In this document: positions 21,590 through 27,113 of the stretch, piece after piece
Layout: each line of letters begins with the position of its first letter
Numbering within the stretch: the first letter of the stretch is position 1
Assembly: GCA_002269645.1 (NCBI GenBank)
Contig: NIVC01003288.1
Location: forward strand, 29,517-93,516
Source of the DNA: Macrostomum lignano
Taxonomy: Eukaryota
Reading direction: 5' to 3'
DNA: 64,000 nt
The notes under the pieces: generated by a model
Told to the model about the DNA's origin: nothing
Seen by the model: only the letters and a program-made list of their open reading frames with translations
Database searches by the model: none
Program-made: the position numbers and the translations under genes

Positions 21590-23187
21590 TCATCCAGAAG
21601 CGGTCTGCTGGATCCAGCTGGTGTACATCTGCACTCGAGTGTACACTCCTGGTCGCTGGGGCTTGGCGCAGCCCTCGCCCCAGCTCGTGATGCCCTGCAG
21701 GTACCAGACTCCGCCGGACTTGCACACGAGCGGCCCGCCGGAGTCGCCCTGGCACGCGTCCTTGCCGCCCTGCTCGTAGCCGGCGCACACCATGTAGCTG
21801 GTGATGGCGCCTCCGTAATGCGACGCGTCGCCGCAGATCGAGTTGGGTACGATCGGCACCATCACCTGCAGCAGCCTGGTGTTGTCCCCAGTGCCCTGCG
21901 TGCTGCCCCAGCCTGTGGCGAAACAGCTGGCCATGTTCGACACCGGCGAGCTCGGCAGGCACACCGGAGACACCTGCGAGTTGAACTGGAACGGCCGGTC
22001 CACCCGCATCATGGCCAGGTCCTGGTTAGTCCGGCTCGAGTCGTAGTTCGGATATCGAACTACCTGCGTCACCTTGCGTCTCTGCAGCGTCGCCTCAGTG
22101 CAGTCCCGGCAGTGTCGTCCCGCGTCAACGCCCCACATCGACGGCGACATGTAGTTCTCGACGCAGTGCGCGGCCGTGATGATCCAGTTAGCGTTGTAGA
22201 TGCTGCCGCCGCAGAAGTGGCCGCCGAAGAGACGCAGCGACACCATCCAGGGCCAGCTGTTCTTGACAGCCTCCTTGCCGCCCACGATGCGAGTTTCGTC
22301 TGGCGGGATGGCGGGCCTGCCACAGCCTGACGGTGCTGGAAAGAAATTTTAATCTAATAATTAAAGAATAGAAGCTCTAAATAAACTTTTTGATGCATTT
22401 CATTCTTACATGGCGGCTTCGTTGTGGTGATGGGCGACACTGTGGTTGTAGTCACCGGTGGCCTGGCAGTTGTTGTCGTCTGGCCTCCACAAACCTCATC
22501 ACTGCCATCTGAGCAGTCTCTGAAGCCATCGCACCACCACTGGTTGAAGATGCATTTGGAGTTGTCCTTGCAGGGTCGCTGGTTTATCGGGCAGTTCAGC
22601 GTAATCGAGCAATACTTCTCATCGGAGCCGTCTGGACAGTCTTTGATGCCGTCGCACTTCCACTTTGAAGGGTAGCAGAATCCTCCAAATCGGCAGGAAA
22701 TATAGCCACTTGGGCAGGGCACTCTGGTGCGGTACTCGTCGTTTGACACGAATCGATAGCGCAGCTGGAAGCCGGACTTCTGCAGGTAGGAATCGCTTTT
22801 GAATACCAGCAGTATCGACGAGGACTGCGACAGAACCGACCAGGAGCCGCCGCCGCAGAAGCGGTCAAGGACGGAGCTGGAGTCATTCCAGCCGTCGTAC
22901 ACAATCAGAGAGTCGCTCGAACACTCCGATGTGTACTCGAGGTCGAATGAGACTGAAATCACCTCGATGCGGTAGCTCGGGCCGTCGGCGCGGATGAAGT
23001 AGCGGCAAGTCGAGTCCGCGTCGTATGGAGTGCGGCCGAACAGGCGGTGGGAGGCGATGACTCCTTGGTTCGTCTGGTACAGAATATCGACGCCACAGTT
23101 CTTTTCGCTGGCAGTAGCCGCCACTTCTTGGGCAGCGGCTGCAGACAGCAGGGCTGGACACAGTGCCAGCACGAATACTAAACTCAT
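21590..23187 (-). CDS. Secreted modular serine protease A: signal-CUB-LDLa-LDLa-Thr/Pro linker-trypsin (exons 23187-22410, 22335-21590)
   Basis: CUB (C..YFIR..FDLE..C..DSL..FCG), two LDLa repeats (C..W.CDG..DC.DGSDE), R/IVGG activation site, TAAHC, DLAM and GDSGGP triad with S1 Asp. In-frame phase-1 intron. Confidence 0.96.
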
Positions 23188-23528
23188 TGTGCTTAACTTG
23201 TGTTTGGAAATTCAAAATACTTATTAAAATTCACCCGTGCAGAACCGCATTTAAATATTCTTAGCGGAGAGGGTAATTATCAGCTAATTGCTTGCAGGTC
23301 AGGTAGAATTTTCTCTCACAATTAAAAATTGCAGGTGCTAATTTTCCGCAGTGATGCAATAATGGTGAAAAGGTTTTCCTCACGTAAGCATTTCCTTAAC
23401 CTCCAAATGTTCCCGGCCGAAACACACAGCTCCACTCCATTGTCGAGATCAATTCGATTCCGAAATTTACGTCTTCCGGCTTCGACTTCCAAAGTCAATG
23501 CCGGAATGATTGCTGCAGGCAAGGATTT

Positions 23529-23987
23529 GACAGACAGACAGACAGACAGACAGACGGGTGGGCGGACGGAGGGACGGACGGACAGACAGACAGACAGACA
23601 GACAGACAGACAGACAGACAGACAGACGGACAGACAGACAGACAGACAGACAGACAGACAGACAGACAGACAGACAGACAGACAGACAGACAGACAGACA
23701 GACAGACAGACAGACAGACAGACAGACGGACAGACAGACAGACAGACAGACAGACAGACAGACAGACAGACAGACAGACAGACAGACAGACAGACAGACA
23801 GACAGACAGACAGACGGACAGACAGACAGACAGACAGACAGACAGACACTAAGACAGACACAAAGACAGACAGACAGACAGACAGACAGACAGACAGACA
23901 GACAGACAGACAGACAGACAGACAGACAGACAGACAGACAGACAGACAGACAGACAGACAGACAGACAGACAGGCAGGCAGGCAGAC
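23529..23987. repeat. (GACA)n microsatellite
   Basis: About 115 units with few variants, lying between the two protease genes. Confidence 0.97.
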
Positions 23988-25437
23988 ACTAAGACAGAAT
24001 GGAAAGAGAAATACAATGATGTCGCGTAGATTGAATTCTTAGAACAACTCAGAGGCTCTGTCCTGAATCGACCTGGATTGCTTTCAACAGCAGAAACACA
24101 GAAAACGGCCTCACTGCAGTGCCGGGAGATTTTGCTGAGGCTGCAATAATCCGGATGAGAAGCAAGCGATGCAGAAAATCAAGGTACGAGCTCAGCTTCA
24201 TTATCCGTCACTCGTGCAGAGCAATCGGTTATCAGTGATGGAAATTCTGCAAAAAGAATGCTTTGCGGAACTCACTGAGTCTGAAATATTTGTCTTGATA
24301 GCTGGAATCCTTTCGGAGTGTTTATGGCCCTGCCATCTGTTTCCTCGGATTCAAAGGTTTCGGTGTATTTCTTGTTTAAACTGTGCAGTTGCTGCGTGCT
24401 AATAATAATGGAAAATTAAAATCAATCCTAAACAGATGTTTCTAAAAATGGTTACTATCTACCTCGGGTCAAAGGGTCACGCCAGGGCTACCATCTGCAA
24501 TAGAGTTCTCATATGACACTTGCATATCCATGCCATGTGATTTTTGCTTACTCAAAATGGTGATCTGCGGCTTTATAACTATAGAACTATAGAACTCCTT
24601 TACAATGACGTTAATCTTTTTCACAGATTTCCCCAAGATAGTATCATTCCTATTCATTTATCCGTTTTGTTTTTCTTGAAGTGACCCCTTTGGAATTTAG
24701 AATAGCGGCAGAATTACATGTATTTCAAAACCTGCTTACCCATGCAAATGAGAGTTCTCAGGGAGTTGGGGATTAGCTATTCAGCTCAATGTCACGCCAA
24801 ACCTCTGTCCGAGAATCTTTCTAGCCCTGAATTAAAAAATTATCTGATGCAAAGATTGCGCATAAATTAGCAGCCGATCGCAGTATAAGACAGCTCTGAG
24901 GTAGGTAGGTACGATTGTTAATCAGGATATTGTTACTCAGGACACCAAGCCTGGCCTGAGGAAGATCTTTTATAAGTTTCCTTTCCATATTAGCCCGTAA
25001 TTTTAAAACAGTTTTTTTTTCAAAATGAGCGTATTGTAAAAGTTTTCCCCTGCGACACGTAAAAGCATAGTTTTCCAATTTTCTGAACCAAGGTTCAGAG
25101 AGGGTTTACCCTCATAACCATAGCTTGAGACGTGCAAATACTTGTTGACAGAATTTGCAAGGCGTGTAATAAAAATGGTCTTGAATTGACGGTCAATACA
25201 GTAATTATAATGTTGGTTGAGTCACCGCTCAGTTGCAGTCGGTGACTGGATAGGCACGTTAAATAAATTTAATTGCAGGCAGCTTGTACACCTGTGAGCA
25301 ATTTATTAATTGTACATCAATTAAACTGTGCAGTATAAGTATGCGACAATCGGCTGCTTGCAAACTAAGGCTACAATTTCAAGTTGTCAAGCCTTCTTAC
25401 CTTGCTATAGGTACTAATAGGTACTATCAAAGTAGCC

Positions 25438-27113
25438 ATGCGACTGCCTAAACTGTTGCCATTGCTTCTAATTGGAGGACTGGCGACATTGAATGTCGCA
25501 ATTGCCGACGAAATTAACTGCGGCGTCAACCTGCTGTACGAGACGGACCAGACCGTGATAGCGTCGCACCGGCTCTACGGCCGGAAGTCCTACCAGCCGA
25601 ATTCTGTCTGCCGGTACATCATCCGCGCCTGGAGCCCCGACTACCGCATCGAGATCACATCGGTGAGTTTTGACCTCGAGTACACTTCCGAGTGTACGGG
25701 CGATTCCCTGACTGTCTATTCGGGCGGAAACGATTCGAGTCCTGTGCTGGGCCGATTCTGCGGATCCCTAGACTGGTCGGTGCTCACGCAGAGCTCGTTT
25801 GTGGCTCTTGTGTTCTCTAGCGATGCTTACCTGGAGAAAGGCGGCTTCCAGCTGCGGTACCGGTTCGTTTCCAAAGACGAGTACCAGAAGCGAATCGCTT
25901 GTCCCAATGGCTACTTGGCCTGCAACAGTGGCAACGGCTGCTACCCATCCAAGTGGAAGTGCGACGGAATCAAAGACTGCAAGGACGGATCGGACGAACA
26001 ATTCTGCACGAGCACGCTTACCTGTCCAAGTGGCCAGGTTGCCTGCAAGGATAACTCCAAATGCATTTTTTCTGGCTGGTGGTGCGATGGCTTTCGCGAC
26101 TGTGGTGATGGCAGCGATGAGACAAGCTGCAGCGGCGGTGGCAATACCGGTGGCAATACTGGTGGAGGCACTGGAGGCAGCACCGGTGGAAGTACGGGGG
26201 GAAGCACTGGAGGCGGCACAGGTGGCGGAACACGTAAGTTAACGTCTTTTAAGGTCTTTTCAACTCACTCAACGCAATCATGAATTTTCCGGTACTTGAA
26301 TAGCAGCTTTCTTGCACTTGAATTACGCCAGACCAGTAACTCAATGCAATTTACTTTGCTCTTGCAGCACCTTCGGGCTGTGGCACGCCAGCCATCCCGC
26401 CAGACGAAACTCGCATCGTGGGCGGCAAGGAGGCTGTCAAGAACAGCTGGCCCTGGATGGTGTCGCTGCGTCTCTTCGGCGGCCACTTCTGCGGCGGCAG
26501 CATCTACAACGCTAACTGGATCATCACGGCCGCGCACTGCGTCGAGAACTACATGTCGCCGTCGATGTGGGGCGTTGACGCGGGACGACACTGCCGGGAC
26601 TGCACTGAGGCGACGCTGCAGAGACGCAAGGTGACGCAGGTAGTTCGATATCCGAACTACGACTCGAGCCGGACTAACCAGGACCTGGCCATGATGCGGG
26701 TGGACCGGCCGTTCCAGTTCAACTCGCAGGTGTCTCCGGTGTGCCTGCCGAGCTCGCCGGTGTCGAACATGGCCAGCTGTTTCGCCACAGGCTGGGGCAG
26801 CACGCAGGGCACTGGGGACAACACCAGGCTGCTGCAGGTGATGGTGCCGATCGTACCCAACTCGATCTGCGGCGACGCGTCGCATTACGGAGGCGCCATC
26901 ACCAGCTACATGGTGTGCGCCGGCTACGAGCAGGGCGGCAAGGACGCGTGCCAGGGCGACTCCGGCGGGCCGCTCGTGTGCAAGTCCGGCGGAGTCTGGT
27001 ACCTGCAGGGCATCACGAGCTGGGGCGAGGGCTGCGCCAAGCCCCAGCGACCGGGAGTGTACACTCGAGTGCAGATGTACACCAGCTGGATCCAGCAGAC
27101 CGCTTCTGGATGA
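25438..27113 (+). CDS. Secreted modular serine protease B: signal-CUB-LDLa-LDLa-Gly/Thr linker-trypsin (exons 25438-26233, 26368-27113)
   Basis: Same domain motifs as copy A, intact triad, phase-1 GT-AG intron in frame. Confidence 0.96.

Follow-up and report, generated by a model that had tools for sequence, protein, structure and literature searches.

The DNA analyzed here, which we refer to as the window, is a stretch of 64,000 nucleotides (nt) of Macrostomum lignano (GenBank assembly GCA_002269645.1, contig NIVC01003288.1, positions 29,517 to 93,516 of the forward strand). It harbors two genes for modular serine proteases, L (left) and R (right), whose catalytic exons are practically identical whereas their first exons have diverged strongly. 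The L gene occupies 23187-21590 on the minus strand and the R gene 25438-27113 on the plus strand, and the two are transcribed divergently, from two exons each, in the head-to-head arrangement that an earlier note made from the sequence alone had described. The L gene consists of exon 1 (23187-22410), an intron (22409-22336) and exon 2 (22335-21590) and encodes 507 amino acids (aa); the R gene consists of exon 1 (25438-26233), an intron (26234-26367) and exon 2 (26368-27113) and encodes 513 aa. Both introns, of 74 nt in L and 134 nt in R, have GT-AG ends, are in phase 1 and interrupt a homologous codon, and both spliced frames are open. The L splice junction is reproduced by an independent UniProt model from Macrostomum lignano, P0001, which is 100% identical to the L protein over 97% of length. 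Between the two start codons lies a spacer of 2.25 kb (23188-25437), in which the repeat search found no inverted symmetry and in which the divergent promoters are presumed to lie. It contains a (GACA)n microsatellite of ~115 copies at 23529-23988. Because tblastn detected no further trypsin, CUB or LDLa copies in the 64-kb window, the locus holds a pair and not a cluster.

The two genes encode the same order of domains. Exon 1 of L (22410-23187, minus strand) specifies a signal peptide, a CUB domain, two LDLa domains and a Thr/Pro-rich linker (Pfam CUB, 8e-17; Ldl_recept_a, 1e-16, in two stretches), and exon 1 of R (25438-26233, plus strand) specifies a signal peptide, a CUB domain, two LDLa domains and a Gly-rich linker (CUB, 1e-17; Ldl_recept_a, 6e-18). 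Pfam analysis of the complete proteins returned, in addition to CUB and two LDLa matches, a full-length Trypsin domain in each (PF00089, E = 7e-72 for L and 1e-71 for R), with positions 1-220 of the 220-position profile covered. The catalytic residues His57, Asp102 and Ser195 are present in the motifs TAAHC, DLAMM and GDSGGP, which align with those of plasmin and TMPRSS2, and Asp189 at the base of the S1 pocket is present as the Asp six residues before the Ser (KDACQGDSGGP). Both spliced translations contain the activation site PPDETR|IVGG, the propeptide Cys (SGCG) and a hydrophobic N-terminal leader, the last read from the translations and not from a signal-peptide predictor. The nearest solved structures of the catalytic domain in the PDB are those of plasmin, TMPRSS2, plasma kallikrein and enteropeptidase (E ~1e-60). 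Domains, leaders, activation site and catalytic motifs together identify L and R as predicted secreted, modular, trypsin-like S1 zymogens, with proteolytic activity likewise predicted. The linkers between the second LDLa domain and the protease are unrelated in composition, that of L (22410-22490, minus strand) being Thr/Pro-rich and mucin-like and that of R (26125-26232, plus strand) being Gly-rich and encoded by an imperfect 12-nt tandem repeat.

The same set of CUB, LDLa and S1 protease domains occurs in mollusc proteases annotated as 'ovochymase-1-like' (Haliotis, Ruditapes and Mercenaria), and three mollusc proteins (P0065, P0088 and P0110) show 36-37% identity over 94% of length. By sequence, L and R can be placed in this spiralian CUB-LDLa-S1 group, a placement that does not imply orthology to a characterized enzyme. 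Vertebrate matriptase, enteropeptidase and TMPRSS proteases draw on the same domain set. Unlike these relatives, L and R have a single CUB and a single protease domain, with an N-terminal signal peptide and no type II membrane anchor: their hydrophobic leaders are short, of the cleavable type and directly precede the CUB domain, and Pfam found no SEA domain. Searches of protein databases, with full-length L and with a profile built from the two first exons, returned only two entries from M. lignano, P0001 and P0078; beyond these, the same searches gave distant relatives only, with at most 49% identity. Look-ups for exact copies of P0001 and of the exon 2 ORF yielded no record.

A repeat search of window positions 19000-30000 revealed one long inverted pair, 21590-22341 and 26362-27113, of 752 nt, 99% complementary and 4020 nt apart. 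When we compared the two arms base by base, pairing each position x with 48703-x, we found a single mismatch in the 723 nt between 21590-22312 and the reverse complement of 26391-27113. It lies at 21650/27053, where CCA stands opposite CCG, and is synonymous, as both codons specify Pro. The earlier note had given exactly these coordinates and this mismatch, which our comparison reproduces. The two tracts form the 3' 723 nt of each exon 2. In the left tract (21590-22312, minus strand) lie the last eight codons of the propeptide (AIPPDETR), the complete trypsin-like catalytic domain and the TGA stop codon of L, and the right tract (26391-27113, plus strand) has the same content in R. At the 3' edge the identity falls to background (~25-40%) right past 21590/27113, and each of these two positions is the final base of a TGA codon, which bears out the claim that identity ends at the stop codon. 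At the 5' edge there are 5 mismatches in the 29 nt across 22313-22341, with background identity beyond. The first 23 nt of exon 2 lie outside the tract: in L they span 22335-22313 (minus strand; PSGCGRP) and in R 26368-26390 (plus strand; PSGCGTP), with four paralog-specific differences, one of which exchanges Arg for Thr. The description of the whole catalytic exon as homogenized thus stands for the 723 nt and not for the start of the exon. Neither the introns nor the 3' flanks of L and R could be aligned with each other, as had also been noted for the introns and the 3' untranslated regions (UTRs).

In exon 1 the picture is the reverse. The first exons encode proteins that are 66-69% identical, close to the two-thirds given before, and are ~70% identical in nucleotide sequence. 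The comparison of synonymous divergence per exon, which had been proposed as a check, was carried out according to Nei and Gojobori. For exon 1 it gave a number of substitutions per synonymous site (dS) of 1.54, with a proportion of synonymous differences (pS) of 0.65, which is saturated, and a number per nonsynonymous site (dN) of 0.35. For exon 2 dS was 0.023 and dN 0.002, and all differences but one lie in the first 23 nt. The dN/dS ratio of exon 1 is ~0.23, so selection maintains both front modules. Older or partial tracts were not found in exon 1, as every window of 40 codons has a dS of at least 0.8, and the weaker inverted repeats of the repeat search (I2-I4, 70-82% identity) correspond to the ancient paralogy of this exon. 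Judged from its divergence, the exon 1 pair is an ancient duplicate. In the codon alignment of the two genes, identity is unbroken over up to 662 nt, whereas 10,000 shuffles of the alignment columns gave longest runs of 29 nt on average and never above 70 nt; this permutation is similar to that of GENECONV and was also among the checks proposed. Under the pS of exon 1, the binomial probability that no more than one of the ~168 synonymous sites of the tract would differ is ~1e-75. Because dS is saturated in exon 1 (~1.5) and only 0.023 in exon 2, we consider it highly probable that ectopic gene conversion between the inverted arms has homogenized the catalytic exons of two old inverted paralogs.

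An R-type entry, BOX15_Mlig002999g1 (P0078), led to another contig of the same assembly, GenBank NIVC01002573.1, 13.4 kb of which aligns with window positions 17338-29211 and carries both genes in the same arrangement. We designate the window copy W and the copy on NIVC01002573.1 N, so that the four copies of the tract are W_L, W_R, N_L and N_R. The comparison with this second copy, a further check on the idea of conversion, gave the same pattern with the same boundaries: the two trypsin exons of N differ from each other by only 2 substitutions and hardly differ from those of W, the four paralog-specific differences at the 5' edge are conserved, and on the 3' side identity again ends at the stop codon. 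Overall, W and N are ~98% identical. Noncoding DNA differs by ~2% (4-5% in repeat-rich parts of the spacer), in addition to large indels; the first exons differ by 0.6-1.2%, with 9/775 differences for L and 5/795 for R, and the tracts differ at 2/723 positions for L and 1/721 for R. These values fit the divergence published for the three subgenomes of M. lignano, which is 2.2% genome-wide and 1.1% in coding sequence (PMC10733133), and for this reason W and N are most likely homeologs of this neopolyploid species. Less probably, they are uncollapsed haplotypes or come from a different assembly. The same tract is found in W and in N, and the pair and its homogenized exon are therefore older than the split between the two copies.

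Some features of N stand by themselves. The public model P0078 is frameshifted: a 1-bp deletion in the G-run of exon 1 of N_R, at the equivalent of 26194, puts exon 2 in the wrong frame and yields a product without a trypsin domain. The model spans 10001-11196 of the NIVC01002573.1 excerpt, which corresponds to window positions 25438-26634. The segment of the spacer with the microsatellite gives more than 1.4 kb of gap columns when the two copies are aligned. The N copy also has an insertion of ~1 kb (excerpt 3213-4253), 190 bp downstream of the L stop codon, which falls between window positions 21398 and 21403 and has no match anywhere in the window.

The four copies bear directly on the question of whether the identity of the tract is real. 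The genome of the neopolyploid M. lignano is notoriously hard to assemble, with 93% of read pairs having more than one mapping locus (PMC10733133), and differing trypsin exons might have been collapsed or cross-polished to one consensus. We regard such an assembly or polishing artefact as very improbable. The pattern is repeated in the second contig, which has different flanking single-nucleotide polymorphisms and indels, and the arms are not literally identical, as W has 1 mismatch and N has 2 mismatches and two private indels. These are 1-bp deletions in exon 2 of N_R, at the equivalents of 26703 and 27042, that are absent from N_L. Since they occur in N_R only, the two arms must have been called independently, which makes collapse or copy-paste polishing unlikely. 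Cross-polishing merges only near-identical copies, and it could not erase the ~110 synonymous differences that are expected from the pS of exon 1. In addition, the edges of the tract make biological sense, as they fall at the stop codon and at the start of the exon, and the catalytic domain of the UniProt model P0001, which is based on the ML2 assembly, deviates in 1 residue only. A fold-back chimera was rejected as well, the 4-kb spacer being asymmetric.

The same alignment allows us to judge whether the identity could be due to constraint on the nucleotide sequence itself, without any recombination, for example through extreme codon bias, mRNA structure or an overlapping element. The high GC content at third codon positions (GC3) of exon 2 (0.86) and the long antisense open reading frames (ORFs) that overlap this exon might suggest this, but such ORFs are expected in any GC3-rich sequence, and exon 1 of the very same mRNA has a pS of 0.65. 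Moreover, only 3 tract positions vary among the four copies, namely, in W_L at 21650, in N_L at the equivalent of 21728 and in N_R at the equivalent of 27062, and each of these variants is a singleton and synonymous. The synonymous sites of the tract do mutate therefore, even among copies that are only ~1-2% diverged, and constraint at the nucleotide level cannot explain their identity. To our knowledge, no constraint freezes ~168 synonymous sites. We thus consider purifying selection as the sole cause extremely improbable, in agreement with the argument made at the outset that it is insufficient.

A quite different origin of the identical exons would be a recent exon capture, by which R, as a CUB-LDLa gene, gained an inverted copy of the protease exon of L through exon shuffling. 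The restriction of the identity to one exon would fit such an event, as would, on the face of it, the R-type GenBank model P0078 that has no trypsin domain, but the missing domain is an annotation error caused by the 1-bp deletion. Against capture, both genes have a phase 1 intron at the same codon, and from the edge of the tract to the splice acceptor there is lower but recognizable homology (24/29 nt, with the four fixed paralog-specific differences). This residual homology up to the splice acceptor indicates that an exon 2 homologous to that of L was already present in R. Together with the shared position of the phase 1 intron, it argues that an existing exon was overwritten and that no exon was newly acquired, and we see very little chance that the capture model is correct. 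Conversion mediated by a cDNA was also considered and was rejected, since a cDNA would have brought along the 3' UTR and exon 1, and both are unconverted.

Gene conversion between the arms, which remains our preferred explanation, would have acted in the following way. An ancient inverted, head-to-head duplication would have given rise to two genes for secreted modular serine protease zymogens. Their first exons would then have drifted under purifying selection until they were too dissimilar for recombination, and the catalytic exons, 4 kb apart and in inverted orientation, would have been homogenized by intrachromosomal nonallelic gene conversion, in which a break in one arm is repaired from the other arm as the template with a noncrossover outcome. 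The molecular pathway itself is what we infer. Conversion requires good homology, which in old duplicates is retained only in constrained sequence, and the tract would thus be limited by homology on both sides. On the 3' side it would end at the stop codon, the unconstrained 3' UTRs being unrelated, and on the 5' side it would end 23 nt inside the exon, at the four fixed differences that are followed by unalignable introns. Exon 1, with its ~70% nucleotide identity, would be out of the reach of conversion.

An additional argument comes from base composition. The GC3 of exon 2 (0.86) exceeds that of the two first exons (0.70 and 0.66; Fisher p = 1.5e-5 and 1.7e-7) and also that of the other coding ORFs in the window (0.55-0.74). 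Such an excess fits the footprint expected from long-term GC-biased conversion and is supportive, not diagnostic. GC3 has been used before as supporting evidence for mosaic conversion in inverted duplicates (PMC3199776).

Did conversion occur repeatedly, or only once? No variant in the tract is shared by both arms of one locus or by both copies of one paralog, so that the four copies form a star tree. The last conversion therefore occurred at about the time of the split between W and N, possibly just before it. The earlier note had spoken of recent or ongoing conversion between the arms; conversion is the only reading that fits the data, but its ongoing nature is unproven by this star of singletons. 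A single conversion shortly before the genome duplication of M. lignano, with none since and without continuing concerted evolution, is possible, although we hold it to be the less likely course of events. Considered by itself, the alignment of the four copies is explained most parsimoniously in this way: all three variants are singletons, the differences between L and R equal those between the locus copies, and the edges of the tract are identical in both copies of the locus. Edges that are limited by homology, on the other hand, would recur at the same positions anyway. The pair is old (dS of exon 1, ~1.5), and it is unlikely that the last homogenization would fall within the last 0.1-0.3% of its divergence unless conversion is frequent. 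Also, the GC3 excess of exon 2 would need many rounds of biased conversion. We therefore think that conversion was probably recurrent rather than single.

Several observations weigh against gene conversion as we propose it, and in particular against its recurrence. There is no tract site at which W_L and W_R agree with each other and differ from a state shared by N_L and N_R, the pattern that would show conversion to be ongoing, and the differences between L and R within each locus (1 and 2) equal those between the loci (2 and 1). The high GC3 of exon 2 could have other causes. The three 1-bp deletions of N_R may be PacBio homopolymer errors or signs of decay of this copy. The evidence consists of assembled contigs of one species, which may derive from the same worm line and the same sequencing technology, and expression or biochemical data for L or R were not found.

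We also considered exchange beyond the two arms of one locus. The catalytic exon might be shared in a 4- to 6-way concerted evolution across the homeologous subgenomes, with ~0.2% difference in the tract versus 1-2% elsewhere, and the arms might in addition flip-flop and invert the 4-kb cassette, so that the front modules become re-paired with the other 3' UTR. This extended scenario seems improbable to us. Between W and N, the tract has 3/1444 differences and exon 1 has 14/1570 (Fisher p = 0.014); at synonymous sites only, the numbers are 3 and 9, which are small counts and probably not significant. The lower divergence of the tract is a weak hint of exchange between homeologs, and stronger constraint on the protein explains part of it. 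As for inversion, the 723-nt arms, 99.9% identical and 4.08 kb apart, flank both first exons and the spacer, and a crossover between them would invert a 4.08-kb segment with both promoters and both first exons. Because the arms are identical, such an inversion would leave both proteins unchanged and would swap only the 3' UTRs. An inversion polymorphism of the spacer had been suggested as something to look for. It was not seen: in the two copies available, W and N, the orientation is the same, and exon 1, the intron and the 3' flank are linked in the same way for both genes.

The window also contains other genes and repeats. Long ORFs at 5118-15790 (minus strand) match ABC_tran, with two nucleotide-binding domains, and ABC2_membrane_3, and by these matches are probably parts of a multiexon gene for an ABCA-type transporter. 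A C-type lectin ORF (17971-18603, minus strand) lies just to the left of the pair, and a rhodopsin/Srw-like seven-transmembrane receptor, in two adjacent ORFs (33079-34384, plus strand), lies to the right. Long tandem arrays are found at 28438-28972, 31494-31882, 36272-37202, 46929-48099, 51577-53159, 53599-53876 and 90-666; the units and copy numbers of the arrays are 41 bp x13, (GTA)130, 14 bp x66, 15 bp x77, 16 bp x99, (ATGGG)55, (GGTA)42 and 27 bp x12. The arrays cause strong local excursions of GC skew in the composition profile.

Mosaic conversion that is restricted to one domain is already well documented for linked inverted duplicates, and the pair described here reveals no new mechanism. 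The closest analogue is the human CTRB1-CTRB2 locus, where two S1 protease paralogs also lie in opposite directions, with internal exons 2-6 identical and the 5' end differing (PMC6145291). At that locus, a 16.6-kb inversion, supported by the identical inverted segments, swaps the promoter, exon 1 and intron 1 and leaves the mature enzyme unchanged (PMC6145291), just as a crossover between the arms of L and R would do with their promoters and first exons. CTRB1 and CTRB2 share 97% identity overall and vary mainly in the signal peptide, whereas the unconverted part of L and R is a CUB-LDLa-LDLa-linker module of ~260 aa with saturated dS. Close inverted paralogs of which only the most conserved domain is homogenized are also known from Capitella teleta (Dlxa and Dlxb) and from Drosophila (trypsin, Hsp70 and amylase genes) (PMC3199776). 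Compared with the Dlx and Drosophila cases, L and R belong to another gene family and another phylum, and with 723 nt their tract is the longer and cleaner one and has the stop codon as a boundary. In palindrome P6 of the human Y chromosome, frequent GC-biased conversion holds the identity of the inverted arms above 99.9%, and the crossovers that give rise to inversion are rare (PMC3723533). Y palindromes measure tens to hundreds of kilobases and are identical over whole arms, in contrast to L and R, where the identity covers only 723 nt of an ancient arm of ~1.6 kb. In the literature we found nothing on the L/R pair or on gene conversion in M. lignano. What sets this case apart is the very clean tract, an unconverted module that is both large and old, and the replication of the pattern in two probable subgenome copies.

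There are practical consequences for work on M. lignano. The 723-nt arms will confuse read mapping, the design of RNA interference and in situ probes and the quantification of expression, and probes against the catalytic exon will match both genes. Two probable subgenome copies carry the same tract and so offer a dated replicate for estimating rates of conversion after polyploidization.

For the biology of the two proteases, the main consequence is that both genes encode an identical protease on different CUB-LDLa-linker modules. CUB and LDLa modules mediate protein-protein binding. Because they generally do so, it is a reasonable inference that the pair may present one protease on two targeting heads, and the front modules would then confer different binding partners or a different localization on the same enzyme. 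The pair illustrates very cleanly how an intron and diverged flanks may divide a single gene into two parts, of which one stays in concerted evolution while the other escapes it.

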